A stretch of DNA of 64,000 nt from Adineta vaga (Eukaryota > Animalia > Rotifera), in contig CP075496.1 in NCBI GenBank assembly GCA_021613535.1, positions 2,046,001 to 2,110,000 on the forward strand, written 5' to 3'. The notes beneath the pieces were generated by a model. It had not been told where the DNA came from. It ran no database searches and worked only from the letters and a program-made list of their open reading frames with translations. The position numbers and the translations under genes are program-made. Shown here piece after piece: positions 7,320 to 64,000 of the stretch (position 1 is the first letter of the stretch; each line of letters opens with the position of its first letter).

Positions 7320-9299
7320 TTAACTTGAATGTGTATTATAATGACGAGAATAGAGTCGTTCAATTGGAATATCTTTACTGAAAATATGTGGAGCTTGAAA
7401 GAGAGTTAAATATGAACCAATTGTAGTTAAAAAAATAAATACTATTAAACAACATCGATCGATAACAAGTGCAATATATCGCCAACCCTCTCTTTCCTAT
7501 TAAAATGAGAGAACATCTACAAATAATAATTGATTAGAAAAGAATACTTACGATATCATCTCGTTGAGCTTCACGTTGAGTTTCACTTATATATCGAATA
7601 TCTCGAATGGCTTGTTGAATAGTCGGAGGATATTTTTCAATGGATTTATTTTTTAAATATCGACTTAAACGATGTAAACTATCCTCTGTTGTTGATAAGG
7701 ATAATTCTTCATCACGTTTATCAGATTTTAATTGTGACATCGCTGTTGCGATATGTGGCTTGGACATTAGTATAAATGGTGGAATTATTTCGAAAAACCA
7801 TCGTTTTACCCAATCAGGCATGTAATGAGTATTTGGATGACGCCAATGGATATTTAATGTTATAATTGTAATAAAGATAGAAGCATTGACAAGAACTAAT
7901 GTAAATAATAAATATGTTCCAAGTAAAGAAAGTGTAAATGATGTTGGTGGAATAAGATCGACGAGTAGAAGATAGAAAACTTGTAATGCGACAAAGATTG
8001 ATATTGATAATGTTAATTTTTCACCTGAATCACCTGAAAAAGAGAATATCTTCTTGCAAAAGAATGAAATGTGTTGTTTTTGTTTTACTTACTAGGTAAG
8101 TAAAAGACAAGAATAGTAAGAAAAGCAATATTAACACAAGGTACAACAAGATTAACCATATAAAACAATGGTTTACGTCGAATACGTAATGTAAATGTTA
8201 CATCAAAATATGGATCATCTTGACAACAATCATAAATAAGAACATGACGAGCTGCATCCTAAAACATAAATTCAATGAATTCAAATTTGAACATATTTAA
8301 TGAGAGATATTTGTCATTCAATTTCTGACAGCTGTCCTGTTACTTATTATAAAGTACTTTTCAAGTATCTATTCCTATTATCTACTCTACAGATGGTGCA
8401 ATTGAATACAAGAATGATTAGTTGTTCGAGAGAATTTATTTCTATTTACAGCAGATAGAATATCCCATTCAATTGATGGATAATAATCAGTCAGATCAAC
8501 ACCAACAGCAATGAATATTTGTCCTGATTTATGTGAAAGATCAACCTAGAATTGAAAATAATCGTTTTGGAATCCAAATGAATTGATTGTTTACTAGATT
8601 TCCATCATGTGACCATGTTCCGAATTTCATGGCACATTTTTGAACATCAAATGGATAATATTGGATATCAATAGCACAATATGATTTGTAAATAACAGGT
8701 GGATGCCATTTAATTGTTCCATTCCAAAACTATCAATAAGAATTTATTTTCTTAGAAATTCAAAATAAGAAACAAAGTTATTTTTAGTCAAATTTACCAC
8801 ATGAGCTTTAGTGATTGTATTGACTTCATAGGTTCCATCAGCATTATTATATAGAACAATATCTGGTACCCAAATATCTGATGAAGGAATTTCTACAACA
8901 TCAATATCACCATATTGACTTGGTATCCATGTTAATTTGTAATCCGTCCATTCCTTGAAAAGAGAATTCGATTTTCTTTCGAGAAAAACAAAAGAAGAAG
9001 TTATTTTTTACATGTTCAAGCCAAACATTTGTTGTCATTATTTGATTTCTTTCATCAATATCTGATAATTGAGATAATTTCAAACCTAATTTAACATTCA
9101 CTGTTTGATTTATCGATGGAACAGGTAAAACAAAACGATTATAATCTTTCATAAGTTCATGTAATAATCTTTTTGCTTCAGCATTTCCTTGAACGTCTAC
9201 AATGAACGAAAGAATATTTTTCGACTTATTTTTCCAAATAATCTTACCAGATTTAAATAAAATGAAAACTTGTATTACAATCGTTATTAAACGAATCAT
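7320..9299 (-). CDS. Nicotinic acetylcholine receptor alpha subunit (Cys-loop ligand-gated channel)
   Basis: [32 protein letters not shown], Cys-loop, loop C vicinal cysteines (YDCCQDDPY), RRKPLFY, DSGEK before M2, and M4 in the last exon. Stop TAA at 7322-7320. Confidence 0.95.
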
Positions 9300-11141
9300 A
9301 ATAATGTTTCTATATTCTTATTTGATCAAATAATAATATAACTAACATTAACTCGATGATTGCCATATTCAGTCGTTAAGATGATGAAAGACAAAGTACA
9401 CTTTGTTGATGACGTTCTGTTTATATACGAGACTTTGGAAGACAATCAATGACGATCGATAGCTAGACATTAAGAGTAAAAGAAGAAATAACGACAGTAG
9501 CATATGGACGAAGTCATCAGCAGAAAATAACTAAAAGAATAAGAAGAAGAAGAAGAAGGAAGAAAGGCCAGAATATTATTCTTTTTCTTCTCTTTTTTTA
9601 ATACTATCATTACGATCATAAATATTCGTAGAAATCTCGGTTTAACTTACCCAATTAGTCGAATAGGGAAGTTAGTTTTGTCGGAATTGAGATGCGAAAA
9701 GACAGACAAATGTTCTTCACTCTTTCACTCTCTCTCTCTCTACGTATGTGTATTCGATTGACTAATAAGGAAGATGAAGCACGCGTTCTTTCTCGTATGT
9801 TTCCCTAGAGGAACAAATCAATCGGAAACGTTAAATCAACAGTAGCAAAGATGCAGAAGATCTTTGCGACTGTTGTTATTATTAGAGAAAAGAAAGAAAA
9901 AAGAAGAATAAGAACAAGAAATGTCGATGAAAGACAAGCAAAAGAAATATAAATTCGCACTCAGAAGAGTATATTACATTGCTCTATGTCTAGTTCTGTT
10001 CTTTTCTTTCTCACTAGTTCCGTTTTCTTTTTCCTTTCCTCGGAATATTTGTCTAAAAATTTATCTTGATGGTGCTGATTATATGCAGAATAATGATGAC
10101 ATAACATTATATTGATAGAAAGAAAAAGAAGTAGAGTACTAATAAGTATCTATTTTCAACTCACTAGAGAATATTCATAAACATAAGTCGAAATAAATTT
10201 TCTTCTTCAACAACAATAGGAATCATATAAAAATAAAAGATATTTTTCGTTGCATATTTGATTGGAATTAACTATCGTATGTAAAGAAATGAATAAGTGA
10301 GCTTTATATCAAAAGACTGAAATCAGAGCTGAGAATTGTGTGAGTACGGAGGCGATGTACCATCAATGACTTATATAGACAGATATTGTTGTTTTAGGAA
10401 TTTGAATACATGATACTACTTTTCATAAATCTGTTGACTTAAGGTCATATAGAAGTGTTTTACATAATCTTGTTATTCATTCTTATCTATGATAGTTCTT
10501 TTTTCATTGTTGATTTTCAACCCATAATAAAATACAATTCTTCACTTTCGAATTTCTCTCAATTTCCTATATATATAAGCAATTTTTAATACCATTATGA
10601 AAATTTCTATTCAAAGTTAAGTATTTCACGATCAGAATAGTAACAAACATGTTTTTCATTTGACCTGCCAAGGATGACAACTATTATTCTTGCCATATTC
10701 ACATTACAATACAAAAATTCAATCTTCTTACTTGTCAAACTAACGTTTCCCTTGTGTGAAGATGATAATTTTCATTGAAAATTTTATTTATACAAAAGAA
10801 AACACATTATTGATTAATCATCTAATCATTGAGTTGATAGTTCATATTCAAAACACATAAACAAAAACACGCGCACACACACTGTTGCATTTTCTCACCT
10901 AGTTTACCAGAAAAAGAAAAACAATGTACTAGAAGAATAAACATACTCAGTGCAGACAAAGAAATCAAAAAAGGAAAATGAAGTCAATCTCTACGGAAAA
11001 AAAATAAGACTGAATAGTGGCAGAAAAAAAGAAACATAAGTTCGCTAAAGATCTTTCTTAGATAACAAATAGTAAACTGAAGAATAGAAATTTGTATAAA
11101 AACAAAAAAAAAGAAAACGAAAATGGTAAAAATAAAACAAT

Positions 11142-14100
11142 TTAGATTTTTTCTTTTGATGGAATCCAAGCATGAGTAACAGATTCTTCATGTTTCATAA
11201 CTTCACACATACGATCATAAACATCACTCAATGTTGCTGCTTCGATCGTTGCTAAAATCAAACATCACATTTGATTTCGTTAATTCTCTTCGATATTCTT
11301 ACCTGTGAATAGATCACCGAATACGTGTTCAACTTTAGTTGCTTTTTCAAAAAGTTGTTGAGCATGTTCTTCATTTGCTTCTTCTCCCATATTATCCCTA
11401 TTAGATGAAAAGTTTCAATCAATTATATGGAACAATCTTTCGAAATGTCTTCTTACATAATCCATTTAACATCACGCGGTTTGACATAAATGACAATTGG
11501 ATAGAGACCAGCTGTAATCAAACGTCGGATTGCATAACCACTAACATCCAAAATACAATGTTTTTGCTACAAAAGAAAAAGAATTTCTGTAATTCATTTG
11601 TTGTTTCTCGATCAAATTTTCACATACATTATTCGCTACATCGCGAACAGCTTGAACACTAGTACCATATAGATTTCCTCCATATTCTCCTGCTTCAATG
11701 AATAAATACTGTTGAATATCTCGTTCCATTTGCTCTCGTGATGAAACAAAGAAATATTCTCGACCTTCAACTTCCTTTTCACGTTTAGTTCGACTTGTAT
11801 CTAAAAACGAACATCATTCTATTAATATCGAAACTTAATCATCGTCTATAGAGAATACGTACGTGGAACACAATTAGCATATTTATCGGGTCTGTCATTA
11901 AGAAATTGATCTGTAAGAATTTCTTTAAATGGACCAAATATGATAACTGGTCTTGTATAATCAACTAAATAATGTAAATATTTATTTTATCATCTGTTTT
12001 CTGTCAACAAGATTCCTAATTATTATTTCATCGCTTCGAATTCTATTTAAAGATAGAAGTCTTCTGACAACTATTCGTCTTTCTAATCTCGAGGTAATAA
12101 AAGATATAGAAATTGACAAAATCTTTTAGCTAAATAAGTTATTTCTATCCTAAGCCGAGATTGAAAGCAAGACAAAAGAAAAGTAGCTTACTTTCATGTT
12201 GAACAACTAATTCATATGATAGAGTAGGTTCAGAATTTTCAGGTTCATTTTCCGATTCTTCACCTGATTGAGTTTCTTTTTTATCACTACTTTTATTGAA
12301 TATACCAAATTTTTTCTTCTTCTTTTTATCTCGTTCAAGTGTATTACTCTAGAAATAAATTGCAATTTGTCTAGATTTTCTTCATGTAAATAGAACATAC
12401 TCGACTATGACTACGGTTTTGGTTAAAATTAACACGTTTTTGTCTTGCACGGTCTCGTTTTTCAATACGAGATTTTGATGGAATTATACCAGTTTCTTCT
12501 TCTACATATCCATTTGTTAAACGTTTTGCTTGCCACCATGAATCGTCAGCTGCATTGGTAACATGCAAAATATCACCTGCATGAAATGCTAAACCAGGTC
12601 CGCCTGGTAAACTTGGATCTTTTGTTGGATCATAATCGAATTCCGCTCTTAGATGAAAGGAAGAAAAAAAAAGTATTTTGGCTTCTCTAGACAAAATCAT
12701 CTTCATACCGAACATAAAATTGTCGTTTTGTTGAAGTTTTCAAACTACCTGTACTACCAGCGGTTTCACTAGTCATTTTATTCCGTTGTTCATCATTACG
12801 ATTTTCAACTCGAACTAAATCTAATTTTAAAAGAGTAATTCTTCACATGATTTTTATATAGAAAAAAACAAACCATTGTATTTATGAACAACATGGAAAG
12901 TGGCTGTTTCACCACAATTTTTCAGCACCGATGCTGCTTCTTCATGAGAAGCTCCACGTAAATCTATATTGTTCACCGACAATATTCGGTCACCTATACG
13001 TAATTCACCTGATTTATCAGCTGCACCGCCTGGTTGTATTAACGATATGTAAATTCCTTTTTCTAAAAACAAAATAAAAACTATTTGACAATGAAAAATT
13101 TTCTATATACCTTGTTTGCCATCTGCACCATGAATATGAAAACCAAAACCAGTTGGACCCCGTCGAAGTACAACTCGATGTTCGCTAAACAAAGAACATG
13201 CAAAATATGTTATCTTCTATTAGTATTAATCACAATTGACACATTGCATGTCTGTTCACTGTCATATCTTGTGTCACTCATCAACGACACTCGTATTTCA
13301 TGTCAAATTATTTCAAAAACTTTTCAATGAAATCCTTCATATTTCTCAATTCTTTTACTTACTCAGTTGGTTCTACTTGTTGTTCTTGAGTTGCTGATGG
13401 ATATCCATTAATTTGATCTGTTAAAATTTGAACATCAGATGAATAGTCAGTTGGATGACCAACAAGTAAAGTTATTGTTTGTCCTTCATCACAAGCACGA
13501 CGAATGGACTCGACTGCATGTCGATGTTCAACAAATTCCAAATCATAACTATTTTTCTAGAAGAAGAAATTTTTTTCACAAAACAAAATTCAACAAAAAT
13601 CGTCATACCGCTGATTGTACATGTACTAAACGATCACCAACTTTTAATCTTCCATTTTTATCCGCAATTCCTCCTGGAATAATATTTGTAATGAATATTC
13701 CATGATCACTAAAAATGTCAACAAACAATAAACATCTGTCCTGTTTGTTTTTTGTTTCAATTAAAAAAGAAACAAACCCTTTGACATATTCATTACTAAT
13801 TCCACCAGCTATTGAAAAACCTAGATGAACATTGGGTGGTTTTTCTAATTCAATTTCTTCCATAGCTGGTGGTTGTAAACGACGAACTAACTAAAAGATA
13901 AAAAAGGATATTTTTACAAAGATTTTCTTTCATAATTTACCAAAACCACATCATTTCCCGCTGCTTTTAAACTCTCAACAGCTGCTTGATGTTCAATATG
14001 AGTAAAATCACTATCATTAACACGTAAAATAATATCATGTAATCTAAAATATGAAAATCATCTCAAATTTAACTTGAATTTATTATTAAATTTTACTTTA

Positions 14101-43101: not shown

Positions 43102-50709
<7,608 letters not shown>

Positions 50710-53468
50710 TCATAAATAAATCTTCGAAATTTATCTGACCAAGATTAAACAATGTCATTATGTTATCTAGAATAAAGATAAATGTTGTCAAATTCTCACC
50801 TTTATCATGAAATCCAAATGAACATGTTCAAATAATCTCTTTCGTTATTATCTTTGTCATATTTATTTCTTTTAAAAAGGTGAAGCATGAAAATGTTAGT
50901 TTAGATGTTCTCTATGTGTATATTTATATAGAGAGAAGAAGAAGAAGACGAAGAGAAATGAAGTTTTTTTTTGTGTATGCACATCCGAGACGACGTTCAT
51001 CGCGTGTCTACATGTTCTGTTAAATGGGTCGACCGACGTGATGGTTGAAAAAGAAGGATGAAGGGGAGTGTAAGCATAGCACAAGGAAATTAAAGAATGA
51101 TTCTCTAAAGCAAAGAGGAAGAAGAAAAGAGGAAGGAGATATGTCTCTCTAAAAAGAAAAGAACGAAGGAATGAATGTAAGAGAAGATGAGATGAGATGA
51201 TGAGCCAAAAGACTCGACAAACAAACAAAATAGAAGGAGAAAGCGAAAAGGAGAGAGAGAGAAAAGTCAGTTGTGATCACAATCATCAGTAAAAGCAGTC
51301 ATACTAAACTGATGACAGATGAATTTAACGAGATTAAAGGTCGTTATGCTTTCATATCAAAACAAGAAGACAAAAAAGAAACTCGGAATTTCGATGAAAC
51401 ATCTCGTTTCCTTCTTTCTTTCTTTCTTTCTTTCTTCCTTTCTTTTCCTCGTTTCTTTTGCCTTCAAACGAAAAGATCTCTAATGATAATTTATTCGAGT
51501 TAACGACAATATAGTGCAAATTTACTGTTGTGACAAGTAAATGTCTATTGACACATTTGCTTTCGGATTTCTTTGTTCTTGTTTCTAATGTTTTTTTTAT
51601 GCCTATGGATAGATGTGTGTGTTTGTGTGTATATATAAATATACATAAAATGCAAAACTCGACTGATGCAAACGTTCGTGCGACAGCTTGAACGATGAAT
51701 GACGCACGAATGCAAACGTTTTGTTAACAATATTAGAACATCAATAAAGCGCGGCACGAGAATTTCCTTTCTCTAGAGTTTAGAAAGATATAGAAAACGA
51801 AGTTATGTATTTTCTAGTTGCAGTTATTACCAGACCGACGAGTGATTATCTTGTCTTCCGCTTCGTCTTCTTCTTCTAACATCCCCGGGAGCCTATCACA
51901 CTGATTATAATGATGCTCCAAAGTGGATATATGTGTGTATGTGAAAAGCAGAATTGACGAGAAATTATATAAATAAAATAATATCAGAGAATAATAAACG
52001 AAGTATGTAAGTCAATTAACTGAAGTCATCCTTCAAGCATGATTTAAACTTGAGGAAGAAGAAGAAGAAGAAAAAAGCAAAAGGTATTCTCTCCTCTTCT
52101 AATTATTTAGTTAACGAGATATATTTAGGTGATTATTTCAAGAAGAAAAATCAATCTGGTCGTTCTCTCCGGTCTTTTTTTCTTCTTTTTTGTTAGATTT
52201 TTTCCTCTCACCGTTATGATTGTCGATTGGTTGACTTAAATGAAATATACAGAGAGAAGAAAAAACCGACAAGTAGAGTACTTAAAACAAGTCAAACCAA
52301 GGAAACAATAATAAAAAAAGAGTCGAAGAAGAAGAAGAAGAAGGAAAAAAGAAAGGAAAAAGGTGCCTTTCATTTCTGATTTTTTTTGAAAATACGATTT
52401 TTTTCAAAGATAATTCTTTCTCTTTTATTTCTTCTTCGTTCTTCCTCTATATCTCATTTAATGATCGATCCAATCAAACTTTCAATTCTTTGTAAAACGA
52501 GAAGAGCCAATACCCGAAAAAAACTCTCCACGATAGATGTCACGTGAATCTCCTGTCTCTTTCTCGGAAAAGAACAAAAAACTACATACTACTATTTTTT
52601 AACATTTAGAAAAATCGTCGACCATCCGGAAATAATACTGGCACACATTAAAGACTTCCGATTCTATTCTAACTTGTTTCTCTGTAGAATCAAAAAAAGG
52701 AGTTTTTTCACCAAAATCGGAAATGTAACACGGACATAGTTTCGCCCATATCAATATCATTCATAATGATTACTTTGAACTAAAGGAAAAAAACGACAAT
52801 TTTCTTGACGAATTCGAACTACTCTTCAAACATTACTTATAAATTTGATTATTGCGTATGAAATAATCAGAATCTATATTTAGAACAAGAAAATAAATGT
52901 CGCATTCCACGATGTTGAGAAAAAACACAAGTTTTCTTTCTTTTTTTGGAATGACATTCTTTCACATCATATTTCTCGTTGAGTTTTTCTTTTTCTATCT
53001 AAAGAGAAAGAAACAGAACAAATATTCAAATATGATCAACATATATATCGCACTTCTATCTTTATTTTTTTCAATTGAAAACTGTTTGTAGTTCTTACGA
53101 TTAAACAGAAGAAAAAAAACATACGACTCACGTTTCTCTTATGAAAAAAAAAACATAAGAAACTACCATGTTAATAGATTTTATTTGAAAATAATCGAAG
53201 TAAATGAGAGAAAGATTTGCTTTTGCTTTTCTCTATCAACTAATCGATCTGTTTTGAAGGCGTTCGATACTTCGAGGTCATTTCCCGTGAGATTTCCAAA
53301 GGGAAATTACATTTCGTTCAGTTTTTTTTTCATTAGCATGAATATTCATAAAAGAAAACATTGTTTTATTGGTTTCTGTTTTTTTTATTGAATAAAGCAA
53401 AATCTAAAATTGAGATTTCAAATTAACAAACAAAACATTGCACCCCTGAGAAGAAGAAGAAAGATCAT

Positions 53469-56400
53469 CTAATGATTAGAGAGTAATTGTTGAAATTTCA
53501 GAGTTTTTAATAATTCTAACATGGAATCAAGTTCAAGATGAAATCGTTCGATTTCACGATTTTTTTGTTTAATTATCGCGCGTAGTTTATTTACATCATC
53601 ATTCGTTTCGGAATCATGTTGTTTGATTAAACTTGTCGTATAATTTTTCGTGATTTGATCACGTTTCGACCAACGTTCTTCTAATTGTTTGATTTTATTT
53701 TGTAAGTCTTGAAAATGTTTCATTTCCTAAAGAATAATTCAATCAATCAGATATTTTTTTCATTTAGATTTATTCGTCCTCGAAAATCTTTCCTTCTGTC
53801 AATTCTGTCTGACGCAACATCATCTATTTGCTTAATTCAATTATCTATGAAGATGACAGAATGTCTGATTTTGGAGGATTGTCTTCGAGTACACTCAACT
53901 TCAAGTCCTAGACATATGTAACAAAGAAATGTCGATTTTGTTCATTGATAGTTACCGGTGTATGATAAGTTCGAGCATCGAAGAGTTCTTGTTCTAGACG
54001 ATGAATCGTAGCTTTTAATTCATCATCATGTGTACGTAAGATTGCTAATTCTCGTGCATTGTCATCGGCATGTTCGGTTAATTTCTACGAAGAAAATTGA
54101 GAAATTTTTGGATATTGATTGATTAGATTTGTACCTTTAAATGATTAATTGTTACATCTTGAGATTCAATTTTACGAAGAAGATCAGTAACACGAGTTTC
54201 GGTTGTTTTATTCGACATTTCATTTATAATTGTTTGTAATTCTAGTTTATGTTGTTGACGAAGATGTAGAATCTTAAAGAAAAGACGATATGAATGTGCA
54301 TTGAAAAAAGAAAAATCAAATTTTACTTCTTCATCTTTTTCACGTAATGCTCCTGCAATTGCTGATTGTCGATCCTCTTTTAAACGCATTAATTCAGCAT
54401 ATTGTTGTTGGGCATCATGTTCTAATTTTTCAACCTAGACGAAGAAATATTTTAGAACATTTAATAAATCTTACTATTTTACAAAAGAATATTATAGAAA
54501 AATAAAATATCACATCGTCAATGTCGAAGTGGAGAATTTATGAATAATCTTGAGAGTGTTAACAGAATTTTCTTTATGCAAAATATGTTTCACAAGAATC
54601 GATTTCATTAGTTGATGGAAAATAGTGATAATCTCAAGGCTTAAACAACTATCTCTCCTATTTTCTATTGGTTATGAATAATAAAATCGAAATGTTTACC
54701 AAATGTTTCAATTGATGATTTTCCGCATGAACAATTTCAGCAGGTGCTAAAACTTGGGTAAATCGATCAGGTTGATATGGTTTATTTCCCATAACTAAAT
54801 TTTCAAAATCAATAAATATCTTTCGAATCAATCAATCAATCAATCTTACTCGCTAGACGAGTTTTTTCTCGTTCACGTTCTGCTAAGAGACTTTTTTGTT
54901 GAACATTAATCGCATCATAAAGTGCTCGGAGTTTTTCTAATTCATCATTTTTACGTTCCAGATCAGTTCGTAATAGTTTAATCGTTTCTAAATCACGTTT
55001 CAAAGCTAAAATAAAACCAAATAATATTTATCAATTTGAAGAAGAAAAAAAACCCATAACTTTACATTTCGCTGGTTTTGATATTTGTTGACTTTTCACT
55101 TTTTCTAATTCAATTTTTAATCGTTCATTTTCACGTCGTAATTGACTTTGTCCTGTAAAAGTTTTATTTTTACTTATGACATCATGAATTTGTTTTTCAA
55201 ATTGATCATTTATTCCAGTCTGTTGACTATTATTATTAACAATTTGTTTCATTAAGAAATATTTCTCTTCAAGAATGCGAAATTCTTCTAAAAGTCGTTC
55301 TTCCGATGTTTGTTTTTCATGTAATGCTTGTTCAGCTTTATGTAATTTAATTGTTAATTGATTTCGTTCATCTAATGGATTTAAAACCATTCCAACTTGA
55401 GTCGTTGGACTTTGTTGACGTCGACGATTGATCAATTCTACAAACATAAATAAATCACAGTCATTTTTTCGATCTTTTTCATATACCTAATTCTTTAACT
55501 TGTCTTTCAAGATCTTTAATACGTTTTTGATCGAATGATTGTCGAATATCTTGATGATTTTTAGTCGTAAAAGAATTCAATTTACTTTGTAAAATATCAA
55601 TTTCTTCTTTTAATCGTTGATTTTCAATAGTTTCATTCTCTTGACTATTTAAATCAGATAAAACAATAGTTGATGATTGTTTTTTAACTATTCCTCCATG
55701 AGAATTTTCATTTCGTTCTAAAAGCATTTTCGTCTGAATTAATTCTTCTCGAAGTTTTTCATTGATGTTAAACATTGATTGTTGAATTTGTTTATTTTCT
55801 TTTTCCAATTGTTTAATTTGATTACAAAGTTTGACATTTTGAGCTTCATAACCTTCGATAAGTTTCTCTAATTCACTAACTTCACGTTGTTTTCCTGTGG
55901 AAATTTCAGATTTACCATCGAAATTTGTTTGAGAAATCTAAATTGAATTGTTTAGAAAAGATAAATTCGAAGAAGAAATGAAATACTTGAGCTTTAAGAG
56001 CGTAGTTTTCTTTTTGCACTTCGCGTAATTCTTCCTTGTGTTTCATTTCGATTGATTGAACTTTTTCTTTTAACATTTCATTGTCATGTTTCAGTTGTTC
56101 AATCGATTCAGCATCTTTCTATAGAAAGGAAAAAGGAATGTGCGAAAATGAATGATGAAAAAACTTTGTACCGAAGAATTTTCTTGTATGGGTGTTGGTG
56201 CTGTTTTTGGTCGATTGACAATACTTGATGATGCTAGAAGAATCTTCTTTTGTAGAAAAAAAAAGGAAAGAAATGTTTAGAATTTATTACTTTTCTTAAC
56301 TGGTGTTTGAGTATTGGGTTTCGAAGGATTTTTAACAACTAAATAAATAGTTCATTAGAAAGTTACAACAATACATTTTTTGTATTTATAGAGTTTGAAA

Positions 56401-57899
56401 TATCGTGTTCAACTTTAAGTAATTATGAAATTAATAAATAAATCAATTTTTACTTGTAGATTTTTGTTGTAATTGTGCTCTGATTTTCGAATCATAAATA
56501 TTCGATCTGGTTGTACGAGCTGGTGGCGTTGATTTAATATTTTGTCCATAAATACCACGTGATACATTCGAATTTGGTGTATTATCACCTGTTGTTGTCA
56601 AGGCATCTATTGATCAGAAAAAAACAGGATAATGATTTAGTTTTAAAAAGTGATTAACCTGATTTTGTTTTTGCTAGGCGACTAAAATCATCGACCGATG
56701 CTGTCGGTCGTGTTGGTGGCTCGAACATGGTCACACGTTTATTCGTTGTTGTTGTTACATTCATTTTCTCTTCATTATGTTCCATTTCTCGACCCAATTC
56801 ATTTGATAAAGATTCTTGAAAATCAATGGTTTTTTTGCAAAAATAAAAACGAAATTCTAAATTTCTTTTACCTTTGACGATATTATCATTTGGTAGTTGA
56901 TGAAGTGGTGTACTCATTTGATGAATTTGTGGTTCAAAAGAATTTAAAACTATTCAAATTCAAATCTACTTAAGAATTCGAAAAATAGAAACTCGTTTAC
57001 CTTCACCAGTTCGTATTGGTGATAATTCTAGATCCAATTCCTTATTTAACAGTCCAAAATCAACTGTATTTCCATTTTCATCTTCTTCAATCTCCTAAAT
57101 AATGATAAATAATAAATTGATGTATGAAAAGATTTGAATAAAAAATCATTTTACATGAAAAAATTTTTGTTTCTCTGTATCTTCATTGAGAGTATCCGAA
57201 CCGATTTTCATTGTTGAAAATGGTGTCCCATCAATTTCATCTATACATAATAAAATAGTTTAACTAACAAAATCTATTTTTCTTCCATACTTCGATCAGC
57301 CAGTATATCTCCAGGTAAATCAGCAACAGGACTAAGAAACAATGTTTAATTATTTTATTCAAATATCTCAATCCTTTTACCTGACTGGTACATCTAATTT
57401 AGCTAATGGATTTGATGGTCGTCTCAATCCTTTTAAAATTAAAAATGAATCATAAAATAACAAAAATGCATCGATCATTACCCGGTCGTACAAAATCATT
57501 TTCATCTGAGGATCCGAAATTTAAATCATCATCAAACTAAATCAATTAAATTCGATATTTTATTCATAAACAATCGATCTTACTCACTTTTGTTTCTTCT
57601 TTTTTCGCTGTTGAACTCTTCATAAACATTTTTTTCGGTTCTTTTGCTGCTATTTTCAAAGATTAAATTGAAAAATTCATCATAGATTACAACATGGTTT
57701 CTTACATGATGATTTCGTTGTTGGTGTTGATGATGAACTGGATGAAATGGAATCATCATCATAACAATATTTCTCTATGGATGTATCGGAATCCGATTGA
57801 TTCTAGACCATGAGAAACAAGATTTTTTTAAAAGTTTTGGGAATGAAAAGTTTGAATTACCAGGTCGTTTTTTTTCTTGTTCGATTTTGTTCGAGACAT
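53469..57899 (-). CDS. CEP162: Centrosomal protein CEP162-like coiled-coil protein
   Basis: C-terminus HTPEMKHF..KIKQLE..KNREIERFHLELDSMLELL resembles the CEP162 C-terminus (HTPEMKHF..KNRELEKFRTELDSILDVL) as recalled. Long coiled-coil exons. Start MSRTKSNKKK at 57899 is inferred. Confidence 0.75.
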
Positions 57900-58163
57900 T
57901 TTTTTGGAAAATAATCAGAAATAGAAAGAAGAAAACAAATTTATTAGGCAAAAAAACGAAAATTTCTGTGTTTATTCGTATCTCTATTGCCGTGAAAACA
58001 AACTAGATGAAAAAAGTTTAGAAGAAACACGCAAACAGGCAAAAACAATGTATTTATAATTATATAAAAGAAATCAAATGAAAATTTATCGTTTTTGTGC
58101 TCTGAAAAATAGAAGAAATATATTTTATATTTTTAAAGAAAAGTTTGGTGAAAGCAGAATGTT

Positions 58164-61100
58164 TTACTTGGGTATTCTTGTACTAGAATTTGATCGAATT
58201 TTTGTTTGAGCTTCTGAAAATTAAAACGAACATTCAATAGAAGAAAGAAAAGATAAGAATTCTACCTTTTAATTGTCGATCAAGTCGATCTATAGATTCT
58301 TGTACTCGACGTTCTTCGATCGACAGAGTTGTCGGTGTATGCGTAGTTATATCTTTAAAAAGTTGAACGAAAATTATGAAATAGAATGCAACAAAAAAGT
58401 TTGATTTTACGTTTTATTCCATTGAATTTTGGTTCGGTTATTTTATTTACAGGATTTGTTGGTACTCTAATATTATTAAGAAGAATAAGTATATTGAAAA
58501 TGAAATTGATTATGATACATACTGTGGTGGTAATCGTGCATCATTTTGACTAAAATTACTACCAGGTATTGAACTCAAACGAAGTTCACTGAATAAAGAT
58601 TCATTTTCATCATCATAATTATTGATTTCATTTGGTTTCGATGATGTCATTGACTATGAATAGAGAGAAAAGATAAATCAATTCTTTGAATTTTTTGCGA
58701 AAAAGAAAACAAATTTTACCATTAGAATATGTGGTGATGATGAGATGGGTGTTCGTCTTGATGAAGGTGAATCAAACATTGTTGGAGAACCATTTGTTTG
58801 TCTTAACGATTGTGCATAACGAGTTTTATGCAATTTAGCACGTAATTCACGTTGACGTAATCCAATATTTGTATATCCTTGCCGAGCTTGACCTGTTGGA
58901 GTAAGAGGATATACAGGTGGTTTCGAACTTGTTGTTGAAGAACATTCAGATGCACGATCATCATTTCCATTAATTTGTCTATACAAAAAGAAACGAGAGA
59001 GAAAGATTTTTTTTCCTCCATCAATGAACGTTATTTGTAAACATTGTTAACATAGCAAGTATCTTATCTTTCTTGACAAGAGTCAATAAAAGATAATAAA
59101 ACTATCTTTCACTTATTCATTTCGACTATTCTTTCTTTTTTTTTACACCTGTATCTTCATCATGTCATCATTCGTTATTGGACTGGATATTGGCGGTACT
59201 CATATTACTGCAACTCTTGTACGTATTGAAAATCGAAATGTAACAATTGAACGTGATGTTTTCTATACACGTTCAATTGAACCGACGATCGATAAAGATC
59301 CTCGTTCAATTATTTCAACTTGGATCGCATGTATCGAAGAACTTATTCATGATTATGTGAATAAGTATCAAGAAAATCAACCAATTATTGGTATTGCTTG
59401 TGGAATTCCAGGTCCAATGGATTACGAACGAGGCATAAGTTACATTCAATCAACTCAATTGAATAAATGTGAGAAATTCTTTGGTCTTAATTTACGTTAT
59501 GCACTTGAAGATGGTCTACGAGATCTAATTTCTCGTTGGAAACGTATTTATAATCCAAAATATTTCACACCACCAACATCACCACGTTCAAGTCTATTTG
59601 GTCAAGAAAAACAAGTGACTCTTGAAAAATCTTTACATATGAAACGAGTTACAGAAATTTTATCGACAACAAATCCAACATCTTTCCATTACAAAGATTT
59701 ACAATTAGAAAACTTAGATTCTGAATCATCAGTTAAAGAAATTACTAATTTTTGTGGTTTACAAGATAAAGATACGGAAGATGTTCAAACTGAAACATCT
59801 TTTCCAGAGAAAGAAATCGATTTATCAACGAAATTAAATATTACTGAAAATCTTACACCAAAAATTTGGACAATGATTAAACAGTTAGCGGAAATTCCAA
59901 TCACATTCTATAATGATGCGACATGTTTTGCTGTGGGTGAAGCGCATAAACATCAAAATAAAGATTATAAGCGTATTCTTGCTTTAACACTTGGTACAGG
60001 TTTTGGTTCTACATTTATCGATGAAAATGAAATTATTCTTCATCGAAATGATGTTCCACCTGGTGGAATGCTTTGGAATTATCCATATGATGAACATTCA
60101 ATTGCAGATGATTGGTTTTCTACACGTGGATTAATGAATATTTATGAAAAAATTCTTCACAATGAATCTATGGAAAATGCAAATCAAGTAAAGATTCGCT
60201 TTCAAATGGATTCCTTCGATGGTCGAACTCTGGCTGAACAAGCTTTAAATGGTGATGAAAATGCAAAGAAAGCATTTGAAACGTTTGCTCGATTGTTAGG
60301 AGAATTTTTAATTCCACATGTGAAAAAGTTTCAGACAGATATTATTATTATTGGTGGAGGTATTGCTCATGCATATCAACTAATCAAAGATGAATTAATG
60401 AAAATAATGGAAAAATCTGTAATGATTCCAGTTTATTTTAGTCTTTCACATGAGAAATCGATTTGTCTCGGTGCAGCCTATCAACAAATTCCAATCTTAT
60501 TCCAATCAACACCTAAAATCTTTCGTCAAACTCATCAAAATCTTCTTCCAGTTATAAAAACTCTCGACATCAATCAATATGATATTTATCCATGTCATGA
60601 AATTCCTATTGGTTCTATTGGCATTGGTCATAAACAATTTCATGAAAAATTATTTCGATTAATCGAAGAAAATCAAATTTTATTAATCGATGGTTTTGTT
60701 GGTACGAATTTCGATGAATTTGCTTGTGAATTAAATAAATCTTATCATTATCAATCGAAAGATAAGAATCTTCCATCGTTAGTTTTCTATGATACACGAA
60801 CATTTCTTCAAACTCATTCAGATCAAAAACGAAATTTTTATTTAAAATCTTCGAAATCAATCTTTGGTAAATTAGCAATAGATTTAAATTTTAAAGATGA
60901 TTTCGTCGATGAAAATAAATTAATTTATTTACAAAAGAATCTTTCTTATCCATGTATTATCATTGGACCTGGTGCTTCATTTGTTCATGAAACAGGACCA
61001 TTAATTTACATTGATTTACCAAAAAATGAACTTTATTATCGACTAGCTGCACAAACGGCATGTTCATATTTAAAACCACAACGACAAGATATTCCCGTAA

Positions 61101-64000
61101 TCAATTCCATTGATACTGATGATTATGAATTAACGGCAGGTGTATATGAACAGAAATGTTTGTATTTTCTTGATTATCCAATCTTTAATAAATTAAAACA
61201 AGAACTTCTTTCTCGAATGACTTTTTTTGTTGACGGACAAAGACCTAATTGTCCAACATGGCTTGATGGTGATACATTTCGTCAAACACTTGCGCATCTT
61301 GCTAATGTACCAATTCGTGTTCGACCATGGTTTGAACCTGGTCCATGGGGTGGCCAATGGTTGAAAACTGTCTGTACAAATCTTTCTCAATTTCCTAAGA
61401 ATTATGCGTGGTCATTTGAAATGATTACACCAGAAAATGGAATTATTCTATCGGATAGAAATCACCATTTGATTGAATTTTCTTGGGATTTATTTTATGG
61501 TTCACAGTCCAATCGAGTTCTTGGAAATGATATGCATTGTCGATTATTTAATGGTGCCAATGATTTTCCAATTCGTTTTGATTTTCTCGATACAATCGAT
61601 GGAGGAAATTTATCCATTCAATGTCATCCAAATTTACAATATATTCGAGAAAATTTCGGAGAAAAAATTACCCAAGATGAAACATATTATATCATCGAAA
61701 CTAAACAACATTGGAAGGAAGAATATGAAAATGATGACAATTCATCTGCTTGTGTTTATCTCGGTTTTCACGAGAATGTTAATCCTGAAGAATTTCATCA
61801 AGCATTACTTCATAGTCGTCAACAAACACAAGAATTTCAAGTAGAAAAGTATATTCAATGTCTTCCATCGAAATTACATGATTTTTTTCTTATTCCAAAT
61901 GAAACAATTCATGCATCCGGACGGAATCAAGTCGTTTTAGAAATATCTGCAACACCTTATACATATACATTTAAATTATACGATTGGTTAAGATTAGGTT
62001 TAGATGGACGTCCTCGTCCATTGAATATTGAACATGGAATGAAAAATTTGAAATTCGATCGACGTGGTGAACAACTTCGTTGTCAACCGAAAACGATTAA
62101 ATCTGAAATTGATCAATATAAGGAAGAACATCTCCCAACACATGATTTACATTTCTATGATGTTCATCGTTTAATCATTGAACCAAATGAATCAATTGAA
62201 ATTCTTCGTCAAACAGAAAATCGTTTTCATTTATGTATGTTAGTTGAAGGTGATGCTATTGAAATTGAATTCAATTCCATTGATAATCAACAACAAAAAC
62301 AAATTCAACAATATAATTATATCGAAACATTCCTTATTCCAGCATCAATACAAGAATATCGTCTGCGACCAATTATTAAGCAACAACAAAAGACAGCTCG
62401 AAAATTTGTTTTGATTATTGCTTTTCTCAAATGGGATTGTGAAAAATTACTCGACTAAGACTTACTTTGGAGGAGGACGATGTGGAAGTGTTAACATTGC
62501 AGCTGATTGAACACGACGTATTGGTGTTTGTTCATTATCTAAATATTTCAATAGGAAATCTTTGTTTTTTGTTTATGTATTTCTTTTCACTTCTTATACC
62601 AATATCAGGTTGTTTAACAAGTTGAGTATCTGATACACATCGTTCATTATCAGTATCTTGTGCAAATCGAACTGTTTTCTTCTAAAAAAAATAATTTTTT
62701 TATGAATTATTTGAAAAACGAAATTATTCATACTTGTATTTCCATATCTTTCAATAATTTTGTATTGATTACTTCCAAACTATCTTTCACACGAGCTTTT
62801 TCACCAATAGTTCGTGTTTGTGGTGCACTTCCTTTTCTCATCGGAACTATTGGTTTATTATTTGATAGATTACTTTCAATCGAAGGCGATCGTTTAAGAA
62901 TACTCTTTTGTTTTTTATTCGTTTCACTTTCATTTCCATCGAGTGAGGTAGGTTTTTGCATAATATTTGATTTTCCATTTGTTTTACCTGCACCTAACCA
63001 TGCTGCTACTTGTTCATCACCAGTAACAGGAGTATTTTTAACAAAGAAACTTTCATGATAACTTCGACGTAATAATTCTTGTTGCTCATCGATGGTTTTC
63101 GTATCAAATGCTGAAGTATTCAGAGGTTTTTTTTGTGGAATATTTACAATAGGAGTTGGTCGGACAATGGGTCCACTGATTTTCTGTGGCTGATAACGGT
63201 TTGCTTCTTCCAAACTATCAATACTTTCACGATCCCATGTATTTGTTTCATCATATTGTTGTTGTTGTGATGATGAAGTGTAGATTGAACTTGAGCAGCG
63301 AAATCATTTAGTACCTGACGTTGAACTTCTTGTAAAGGTGAAGTATATTGAACGGGATTGATATATTGTGGCACTTGAACGACAGAATTAGTTCGTGCTA
63401 AAACGGAAGGATTTCTTGGATCAGATTTGTATGGATTATAAATCGGTTGTTGTGATCCTAATTCTTCCATTGATATCGATCGACGAAAAGTTATATTTGC
63501 TCTTGGTCGCTGTTGTAGATTCGTAGGTGGTCGTCTTGGTGTAGATCGATTCGATAGTTGACGTCCTGTGATTGTTTCAATTGCTCGATCGAATTTTTCG
63601 GGATCTTTAAATAATAACATAACGTTTTTATTGATCAAATTTAGTAAGAATAAAACGTTTCATTTACCCATTACAGTAAATCCTGGAAGATTTCGTTGAA
63701 ATCGCATTGTTGCTTGTACGGTTGCTGCTTTCCGTTGTGCTAAAATTGCCTGACGTTTTCGTTCGATGGCATCATTAGCTTCTTGTTCACGTTTCTTATA
63801 TGATCTAAAACAAATTTAATAATTCACTTTGAAACGGAAGATATTTTATATACATACTTGCATCGCTCAGCTGTTTCTTTCATAATTTCTCGTTCACGAA
63901 CAATTCGTAATGAACGTTCTTGAAGAAATTCTTGTCGCCAACTTTCAAATTGTTCATCTTGATCACTAAAATATACAATAAAAATCGAGTCTTACGAATA
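58164..64000 (-). CDS. CEP126/KIAA1377-like protein (5' end outside window), host of the nested gene
   Basis: Exons from >63970 down to 62466 splice in phase across intron 62465-58979 to exons ending RIPK* (58166-58164). ILAQRK..ATMRFQR, KSILKR and VKDSLE resemble CEP126 motifs as recalled. The gene structure is more certain than the identity. Confidence 0.55.
59162..62458 (+). CDS. Intronless ROK-family sugar kinase fused to a class I mannose-6-phosphate isomerase-like domain (probable bacterial HGT)
   Basis: 1098 aa. ROK motifs IGLDIGGT, GIPGPMDY, NDATCFAVGE, LTLGTGFGS, IIGGGIA. PMI/cupin motifs PWFEPGPWGGQW, FPIRFDFLDT..NLSIQCHP, QDETYY, TIHASG, LEISATPY, FKLYDWLR. Confidence 0.92.
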   Translation: MSSFVIGLDIGGTHITATLVRIENRNVTIERDVFYTRSIEPTIDKDPRSIISTWIACIEELIHDYVNKYQENQPIIGIACGIPGPMDYERGISYIQSTQLNKCEKFFGLNLRYALEDGLRDLISRWKRIYNPKYFTPPTSPRSSLFGQEKQVTLEKSLHMKRVTEILSTTNPTSFHYKDLQLENLDSESSVKEITNFCGLQDKDTEDVQTETSFPEKEIDLSTKLNITENLTPKIWTMIKQLAEIPITFYNDATCFAVGEAHKHQNKDYKRILALTLGTGFGSTFIDENEIILHRNDVPPGGMLWNYPYDEHSIADDWFSTRGLMNIYEKILHNESMENANQVKIRFQMDSFDGRTLAEQALNGDENAKKAFETFARLLGEFLIPHVKKFQTDIIIIGGGIAHAYQLIKDELMKIMEKSVMIPVYFSLSHEKSICLGAAYQQIPILFQSTPKIFRQTHQNLLPVIKTLDINQYDIYPCHEIPIGSIGIGHKQFHEKLFRLIEENQILLIDGFVGTNFDEFACELNKSYHYQSKDKNLPSLVFYDTRTFLQTHSDQKRNFYLKSSKSIFGKLAIDLNFKDDFVDENKLIYLQKNLSYPCIIIGPGASFVHETGPLIYIDLPKNELYYRLAAQTACSYLKPQRQDIPVINSIDTDDYELTAGVYEQKCLYFLDYPIFNKLKQELLSRMTFFVDGQRPNCPTWLDGDTFRQTLAHLANVPIRVRPWFEPGPWGGQWLKTVCTNLSQFPKNYAWSFEMITPENGIILSDRNHHLIEFSWDLFYGSQSNRVLGNDMHCRLFNGANDFPIRFDFLDTIDGGNLSIQCHPNLQYIRENFGEKITQDETYYIIETKQHWKEEYENDDNSSACVYLGFHENVNPEEFHQALLHSRQQTQEFQVEKYIQCLPSKLHDFFLIPNETIHASGRNQVVLEISATPYTYTFKLYDWLRLGLDGRPRPLNIEHGMKNLKFDRRGEQLRCQPKTIKSEIDQYKEEHLPTHDLHFYDVHRLIIEPNESIEILRQTENRFHLCMLVEGDAIEIEFNSIDNQQQKQIQQYNYIETFLIPASIQEYRLRPIIKQQQKTARKFVLIIAFLKWDCEKLLD

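Follow-up and report, generated by a model that had tools for sequence, protein, structure and literature searches.

An apparently Bacteroidota-derived ROK/PMI-like gene nested antisense within one intron of a gene conserved in bdelloid rotifers

We analyzed a 64,000-nucleotide (nt) stretch of the Adineta vaga genome (contig CP075496.1, positions 2,046,001 to 2,110,000; hereafter the window) that contains a long open reading frame (ORF) of bacterial type, coding for a ROK sugar kinase fused to a PMI-like cupin. In all probability, this Bacteroidota-like gene lies antisense within a single intron of a host gene that is conserved among bdelloids and possibly related to CEP126, and it codes for a single polypeptide consisting of a ROK domain, a middle domain and a PMI-like domain. 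A foreign gene inside a spliced host intron had been proposed in a preliminary description of the window. Two observations now support this proposal: relatives in Bacteroidota share the same domain architecture, and RNA-derived sequences join the host exons on both sides of the ORF. The coordinates of all the relevant features are listed in Table 1.

The host gene is read on the minus strand. Its upstream exon closes with ..CCA AA at position 62466 and is followed by GTAAGT, while the downstream exon opens with A CAA ATT at 58978 and is preceded by a pyrimidine-rich tract ending in TATAG. The joined bases AA|A make up a lysine codon, and the reading frame is open on both sides of the intron. 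We compared this arrangement with RNA-type contigs from three runs (X1 and X2 from study P1, X5 from study P2) and with DNA contigs from an independent 2013 assembly (run X9). The RNA-type contigs are unstranded, and their alignment to the window covered 5.9 kb around the nested ORF. The joint from 58978 to 62466, which skips 3487 nt (CT..AC on the plus strand, equivalent to GT..AG on the minus strand), is present in X1, X2 and X5 contigs and absent from the contigs of DNA run X9. Moreover, a single 2038-nt X2 contig connects segments 58523-58653 and 58720-58978 with 62466-62538, 62591-62681, 62734-63604 and 63668-63804, linking two exons below the ORF to four above it. This contig, together with the occurrence of the joint in all three runs, leads to the conclusion that the host exons on the two sides of the ORF belong to a single transcription unit. 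Splicing of its pre-mRNA joins 62466 to 58978 and takes out the whole foreign gene.

Eleven other joints found in the RNA-type runs skip 52-67 nt each. None of them occurs in X9, and therefore these short joints also derive from spliced RNA. The intron that harbors the nested gene is about 55 times longer than its neighbors in the 5.9 kb covered. The sequence, the reading frames and the RNA joint in three runs thus bear out the splice sites, the matching phase 2 and the 3487-nt length given in the preliminary description. Its further statement, that no larger coding-region intron was found in the window, holds within the 5.9 kb compared. The ORF occupies 94.6% of the intron (3297 of 3487 nt) on the opposite strand, close to the 95% originally estimated. 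The last base of its stop codon (62458) is 7 nt away from the first base of the intron (62465), as had been noted, and its ATG (59162) is separated by 183 nt from the last intron base (58979), a distance previously given as about 180 nt. If the donor is read through, the host frame runs into an immediate stop (AAG TAA, 62465-62463), because the GTAAGT donor follows the second base of a codon. There may be a short host isoform that keeps the intron and ends at this stop. Misassembly at an edge had been named as one circumstance that would overturn the description. However, two parts of the window, 58000-62053 and 62225-63371, are matched colinearly by X9 DNA contigs, and since both intron edges are covered in this way, there is no misjoin at either of them.

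The nested ORF codes for a protein with three distinct parts. The N-terminal part matches the ROK family with a score well above the gathering cut-off (84.8 versus 22.9 bits for PF00480), the match being composed of two stretches (amino acids (aa) 1-90 and 235-421) on either side of a low-complexity insert. The insert is not an intron, as the RNA-type contig 59281-59965 is colinear with it. The ASKHA motifs DIGGT (aa 9-13) and GTGFGS (aa 278-283) agree with the bacterial consensus, and the best matches among solved structures are the Bacteroidetes-type kinases 3MCP and 3R8E. The C-terminal part matches the solved phosphomannose isomerase (PMI) structure 1QWR both as a single sequence (2.4e-6) and as a profile of 31 homologs (1.1e-14, chain residues 71-309), and the profile also matches 1ZX5 (6.8e-8). 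His822, Glu840 and His917 align with the 1QWR motifs VHP, TEcWY and LHA, respectively. In the alignment, all of the catalytic motifs agree with the bacterial consensus in each of the four group A rows aligned (A. vaga, A. steineri, Rotaria sp. Silwood1 and R. magnacalcarata). The middle domain features a YIDLPKNE motif with invariant D, K and E residues as well as a DGFVGT motif, and has no canonical Walker A lysine. Its AlphaFold2 model (predicted local distance difference test score of 77.7) was matched by Foldseek to PanK and UCK2 at E of about 1e-4 with template modeling scores of 0.33-0.50. Because these matches are weak, we left the middle domain without a named function. Based on the motifs and on the annotation of bacterial relatives, the nested protein is likely to be a bifunctional hexose (mannose-type) kinase/isomerase. 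Such an enzyme would phosphorylate the hexose and then isomerize the 6-phosphate, converting mannose to fructose-6-phosphate. As a separate observation, X9 DNA contigs are short and fragmented at 62026-62254, and their summed depth is 177-195 compared to about 110, which suggests two alleles or a short repeat in the 3' part of the ORF.

To place the nested protein among its homologs we used a word search and a phylogenetic tree. Of the 1483 relatives found by the search, the best 120 were listed. Rotifer sequences come first and are followed by about 80 proteins of approximately 890 aa, which share 36-40% identity with the query over 75-79% of its length. The named non-rotifer relatives among these best 120 are all from Bacteroidota (Flavobacterium, Chitinophagaceae and others) except for one metagenome-assembled genome of Clostridia, and no non-rotifer eukaryote is named among them. 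Many of the relatives are annotated as 'sugar kinase/mannose-6-phosphate isomerase class I'. They share the order of the three parts, and therefore the whole three-part architecture is bacterial. In the tree, built from 31 sequences, a long stem leads to a single clade (100 SH-aLRT) that unites the rotifer-type proteins. Judging from these sequence relationships, the nested gene was acquired from a Bacteroidota-like bacterium.

Codon usage and selection point to a long stay of the gene in its host. The GC content at third codon positions (GC3) is 0.149 for the nested ORF and 0.148 for the host exons, with an overall GC of 31%. The ratio of nonsynonymous to synonymous substitution rates (dN/dS) against the A. 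steineri ortholog is 0.29 over 742 codons; the nested gene is under purifying selection. The locus is at 2.1 Mb of the 15.2-Mb chromosome (contig C4), where genes are dense and synteny is kept, and not at an end rich in transposable elements (TEs). The gene had been described as intronless. This is correct for A. vaga, but its orthologs carry one short GT-AG intron of roughly 55-65 nt, which contains stops and is located at about codon 346. In A. vaga, positions ~60185-60215 hold 30 in-frame bases that start with GTAAAG and no intron, and the contig 60021-60563 is colinear here. The ortholog intron was gained after the transfer and was later lost or partly exonized in A. vaga.

The same nesting is present in other bdelloids. 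We compared the loci of A. steineri (L007), Rotaria sp. Silwood1 (L008) and R. magnacalcarata (L009) as well as those of three metagenomic bdelloids (L017, L021 and L022). The preliminary description had suggested looking at whether orthologous introns are empty or occupied. Occupied is the answer for all six loci, in each of which host exons are found on either side of the nested ortholog. The gene order in the three named species is CEP162, host 3' exons, ROK gene on the opposite strand, host 5' exons, WD40 and His_Phos_1; when the A. vaga locus is counted, the nested gene is flanked by CEP162, host, WD40 and His_Phos_1 genes in seven loci. Wherever the splice sites were read (four loci), the donor is AA|GTAAG, the acceptor is TAG|ACAA and the phase is the same. 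The gap on the stop side, 7 nt in A. vaga, is roughly 10-45 nt in L007, L008, L009 and L017, and the spacer on the ATG side, 183 nt in A. vaga, is about 560-1430 nt in the other species. Since the layout is common to A. steineri, the two Rotaria species and the three metagenomic bdelloids, it must be old. On this comparative evidence it predates the Adineta-Rotaria split, and it probably predates the bdelloid genome duplication as well. The nested copies of the metagenomic bdelloids are strongly diverged: one is 937 aa long, one has frame changes and one is without about 185 aa of the PMI core. Their catalytic motifs are lost or degenerate, yet the long intron is kept in all three.

A. vaga has another full-length copy of the gene, which is located on chromosome 1 (contig C1) and is not nested. 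The neighborhood of this paralog is collinear with positions 46790-52000 of the window, and the same adjacency is seen in A. steineri. It follows that a ROK-PMI gene was present at the locus before the block was duplicated. No host exons were found near the paralog when each exon was searched by tblastn within 20 kb (best E 0.09). The host gene is single-copy, as genome-wide searches with two exons and DNA searches return only the locus itself, and the orthologs of the chromosome 1 duplicate also sit alone. For the comparison with a homeologous intron that the preliminary description had suggested, the chromosome 1 block thus offers no host gene. In the simplest history, the gene would have been already nested when the block was duplicated, CEP162 and the host gene would then have been lost from one copy, and the ROK-PMI gene left there would have lost its catalytic motifs later. 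In the duplicate group (P0007, P0010, P0012, P0016 and P0017), the two glycines of DIGGT, the GTG motif and His822 are gone, with, for example, DISDS in place of DIGGT and Q/R-C-N/T in place of QCH. By its motifs this group looks like a pseudoenzyme or a repurposed protein, whereas the nested copy is the one of the two A. vaga copies that appears catalytically intact.

RNA-type contigs tile the nested gene from 59281 to 62495 at a depth of about 4-6, approximately a third of that of the host. There are no such contigs at 58985-59181, the depth in X1, X2 and X5 being zero or near zero. This pattern is consistent with an independent transcript beginning shortly ahead of the ATG. The nested gene would then be transcribed from its own promoter within the 183 nt beside the host acceptor. 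As only these 183 nt separate the ATG from the acceptor, the spacer would have to hold the promoter and the 5' untranslated region (UTR) of the nested gene in addition to the host splicing signals. At the other end, the unstranded contig 62225-62495 crosses the nested stop and reaches 30 nt into the host exon, representing either the nested 3' UTR or an intron-retaining host transcript. Because the stop codon is only 7 nt away, we infer from the geometry and from this one contig that the nested 3' UTR enters host exon 62466-62538 as antisense sequence. The nested transcript would thus end in or beyond this exon. The host polymerase, for its part, crosses 3.5 kb of antisense gene, which the spliceosome then removes. 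With transcripts overlapping in this manner, the two units would collide head-on and could form double-stranded RNA. The transcriptional interference or co-regulation predicted in the preliminary description would be possible consequences. One X1 contig matches the window only from 60020 on and has 255 nt of unlike sequence on the other side, with a depth of 29.5 compared to about 4; it could be a chimera or a transcript that shares a short stretch.

An arrangement of this kind calls for alternative explanations to be considered, the most obvious being that the ORF lies between two distinct host genes, of which the upstream one ends at AAG TAA, and that there is no intron. The immediate in-frame stop encountered upon donor read-through would be accounted for, and public annotations agree with it to a large extent. 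In A. steineri and the two Rotaria species, the upstream model is a 445-471-aa gene that ends in ..P.K through donor read-through. The downstream exons are called as a separate gene of 204-229 aa in A. steineri and Rotaria sp. Silwood1, and in R. magnacalcarata they form part of the CEP162 model. For A. vaga, the model I4U23_017794 (P0140, 418 aa) is also limited to the 5' part, although it ends earlier, in a retained short intron. However, the exact GT-AG joint is found in three runs from two studies, it is missing from DNA, and one contig spans it. In addition, the four species compared at sequence level agree in donor, acceptor and phase, and an in-frame TAA is just what a GTAAGT donor placed after the second base of a codon is expected to produce. 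The two-gene reading, which the preliminary description had linked to a lack of spliced reads, was rejected because of the RNA joint 58978|62466, and we assign it a very slight probability. It is rather the read-through stop that explains why the host gene is split or truncated in all public gene models inspected. The bacterial type of the protein and its lack of an intron in A. vaga might suggest bacterial contamination or a misjoin. This possibility is negligible: GC (31%) and GC3 (15%) are the same as in the host, host splicing runs across the ORF, the independent 2013 DNA assembly spans both edges, and six other assemblies have the gene at this locus. The earlier argument that the layout speaks against contamination is therefore well founded. 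Colinear DNA at the edges, six other bdelloid loci and host codon usage together exclude contamination and misassembly.

It might further be argued that the ORF is a silent intronic passenger with neither a transcript nor a function of its own, and that the RNA coverage comes from unspliced host pre-mRNA or DNA carry-over. The contigs over the ORF are indeed fragmentary as well as unstranded, at about a third of host depth, and the nested copies of L017, L021 and L022 have lost catalytic residues, frame or part of the PMI core. Yet the 1098 codons of the A. vaga ORF are intact, its dN/dS is low, its GC3 equals that of the host, and its motifs follow the bacterial consensus throughout group A. 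Besides, the coverage stops at the 183-nt spacer even though the spacer belongs to the same intron, and the nested orthologs acquired and kept a spliceosomal intron. Taken together, these data make a silent passenger improbable. A different question is whether there was any intron before the transfer. Foreign DNA could have hit a coding exon and the insert could have become an intron, in which case the transfer itself would have created the 3.5-kb intron, splicing would have rescued the disrupted exon, and the antisense layout would have been kept even where the enzyme decayed. The intron edges are tight on the stop side in A. vaga, L007, L008, L009 and L017, which speaks for this scenario. 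It also draws on locus L019 (312-kb contig, 24% GC; positions 10001-13141). Here, a homolog of the host 5' half is followed by a GT-AG intron of about 107 nt, which seems to match a neighboring small bdelloid intron, and then by a 398-codon frame weakly matching the downstream exon. An intron and a ROK gene are both missing from the corresponding position, and no ROK gene is found within 10 kb. L019 thus hints, from sequence resemblance, that the two host halves were one gene before the insertion, perhaps without an intron at that point. On the other hand, hhalign gives the match to the downstream exon a probability of 7.7%, short of significance, and a good match (95.8%) is confined to the N-terminal 75 aa. 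Moreover, the locus is not syntenic, and the ATG-side spacer is by no means tight in the other species. We consider creation of the intron by the transfer unlikely, but if it did occur, the insert or its transcription may have become part of host gene expression. Related to this, L018 and L019 (eukaryote, 24-28% GC) both contain a distant homolog of the host 5' half, which consists of one long exon that ends in a GT donor. The organism may lie outside the bdelloids and serve as an outgroup for dating the intron.

The interpretation we favor, a Bacteroidota-like gene placed antisense in one host intron and coding for a single three-part polypeptide, has to be weighed against several unfavorable observations. 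Since the tree was rooted by hand on bacterial sequences, the taxonomic distribution is what indicates the direction of transfer. Of the features classical for ROK proteins, neither the cysteine cluster of the zinc motif (CxCGxxGC) nor ExGH is found in aa 283-330. Pfam and NCBIfam scans of aa 451-1098 gave no match, and the PMI type I models did not match this region even at E = 10. As for expression, with unstranded contigs at a depth of about 4-6, the coverage of the ORF may partly be unspliced host pre-mRNA, so that the independent antisense transcript and its ends are putative. Finally, the nested copy is degenerate in three lineages, which means that the layout can persist without the enzyme.

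The host gene itself is less easily classified than the gene it contains. Its first exon (MAWVERM..) is beyond position 64000. The 5' half has a charged, coiled-coil-like N-terminus followed by low-complexity sequence, and both this half and the 86-codon exon downstream of the large intron are strongly conserved among bdelloids. Host searches were performed exon by exon, the only whole models being database proteins. No Pfam match was obtained for any single host exon or for the annotated 5'-half proteins even at E = 1, and none of them matched PF15352 (K1377). In the Atlas, the A. steineri 5'-half protein has K1377 clusters as all 10 of its top feature neighbors (0.90-0.91, 188-190 shared features); the downstream exon gave 0.78 to unrelated clusters. 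A profile of the 5' half retrieved 33 matches from 1.84 billion proteins. All of them are bdelloid-type fragments except P0189 (E 2.5e-4, AT-rich), and no Pfam families were found in P0189 and its relatives, one of which is encoded at L019. The host is thus well conserved in bdelloids and barely traceable outside. The label 'CEP126-like' given to it earlier is retained as a lead from the Atlas feature score; with no Pfam match, the identity with CEP126/KIAA1377 is only possible. The clear centrosomal gene of the region is not the host but its downstream neighbor (~52000-57900, minus strand, ATG at ~57897), whose counterparts in the orthologous loci carry CEP162 Pfam families. As the host stops at 58086-58088, the two genes are separate.

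Some irregularities were noticed in the host exons. At 63260-63275, within exon 62734-63604, there is a frame problem in a CAA/TTG repeat, where two overlapping ORFs in different frames meet. Here, 7 bases (TTGTTGT) are inserted after 63267 in X1 and X2 contigs, and 2 bases are missing at 63269 from the DNA contigs of 2013; the insertion and the deletion shift the frame equally. The public A. vaga model masks the problem with a false intron. It is probably an assembly error or a microsatellite allele. One exon has alternative splice ends, 62600 (X1 and X5) and 62591 (X2), that differ by 9 nt in frame. The intron 58653/58652-58720 shows a one-base difference, with an extra G in X5.

Table 1. 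Features of the nested gene, its host and related loci (window positions unless a locus or contig is given)
Feature	Position	Strand	Remarks
Nested ROK / middle domain / PMI-like gene	59162-62458	plus	1098 aa, one continuous ORF, no internal stop
ROK sugar-kinase domain, aa 1-421	59162-60424	plus	Pfam PF00480, 84.8 bits
DIGGT motif	59186-59200	plus	aa 9-13
Low-complexity insert, ~145 aa (about aa 90-235)	59432-59863	plus	No counterpart in bacterial relatives
Middle domain, aa 445-750	60494-61411	plus	Conserved in bacterial and rotifer homologs; weak P-loop nucleoside/pantothenate-kinase-like fold
PMI-like cupin domain, aa ~751-1098	61412-62455	plus	Profile match to 1QWR, 1ZX5
Probable metal ligands	His822 61625-61627; Glu840 61679-61681; His917 61910-61912	plus	From alignment columns
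Host intron	58979-62465	minus	3487 nt, GT..AG, codon split after 2nd base (AA|A = Lys)
Spacer, host acceptor to nested ATG	58979-59161		183 nt; host polypyrimidine tract and acceptor
Gap of 7 nt, nested stop to host exon	62459-62465		GACTTAC on plus = reverse complement of host donor GTAAGTC
Host exon 5' of large intron	62466-62538	minus	Ends ..NEQTPIRRVQSAAMLTLPHRPPP+K; read-through = AAG TAA
Host exon 3' of large intron	58720-58978	minus	86 codons; 79-89% identical across five bdelloid loci
Further 5' host exons	62600 (or 62591)-62681, 62734-63604, 63668-63804, 63858-~63957	minus	RNA joints, translations, annotated protein P0140
Further 3' host exons	58523-58653, 58411-58466, 58266-58352, 58168-58213, ..-58101	minus	RNA joints, frames
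Host stop TAA	58086-58088	minus	From frame
Ortholog intron	L007 8973-9027; L008 ~9093-9145; L009 ~9078-9171		A. steineri and two Rotaria species
Diverged nested copies	L017 7115-9928; L021 10171-12977; L022 9806-12706		41-45% identity, compared with 54-93% for host exons
ROK-PMI paralog (L002)	C1:9872756-9876061		Full-length intact ORF, 58% identity

The locus is among the cleanest anchors of a bacterial gene in an animal chromosome, as host splicing across the gene excludes contamination. It also holds a lesson for annotation, since a read-through stop at a donor splits or truncates host gene models. Furthermore, it offers several natural experiments: a 3.5-kb antisense gene is accommodated in a genome with introns of about 55 nt, the nested copy retains the catalytic motifs that the un-nested duplicate has lost, and in some lineages the nested copy decays while the intron stays.

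Comparison with known systems helps to put these features into perspective. The closest counterparts of the nested protein are Bacteroidota fusions of about 890 aa annotated as 'NBD/HSP70 family sugar kinase / mannose-6-phosphate isomerase class I', for example those of Flavobacterium granuli, Dinghuibacter silviterrae and Danxiaibacter flavus. Both have the ROK-middle-PMI order and the DxGGT/S, GTGxG, QCH, E and H motifs, and they are 36-40% identical over about 77% of the length. The rotifer gene differs in its ~145-aa ROK insert, AT-rich host-like codons, eukaryotic context and the intron present in its orthologs. We found no biochemical study of a bacterial ROK/PMI fusion in the open-access literature. 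The comparison of the host with CEP126/KIAA1377 (PF15352) is less close: they are alike in the K1377 neighbors of the host in the Atlas and in the coiled-coil-like N-terminus, and unlike in that the host has no Pfam match.

Genes nested in introns are common in Drosophila and mammals, a familiar example being OMG, EVI2A and EVI2B, which lie antisense in an intron of NF1. The A. vaga locus resembles such animal cases in that one intron accommodates a whole gene of opposite orientation, over which the host transcript is spliced. It differs in that the nested gene is bacterial, fills 95% of the intron and stops 7 nt from an exon, all this among neighboring introns of only 52-67 nt. Foreign genes of bdelloid rotifers are reportedly the subject of work by Gladyshev et al. 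(2008) and Flot et al. (2013). An earlier report of this nested gene, or of foreign genes in bdelloid introns, was not found in the open-access literature. Other bdelloid foreign genes are similar to the one considered here in their non-metazoan origin, amelioration, expression and conservation among bdelloids. However, unlike those in TE-rich chromosome ends, the nested gene is found in a gene-dense syntenic region, with a documented host splice and the same setting in seven loci. Nested genes are well known, as are the foreign genes of bdelloids; this locus, which combines the two, is an unusually well-anchored case.

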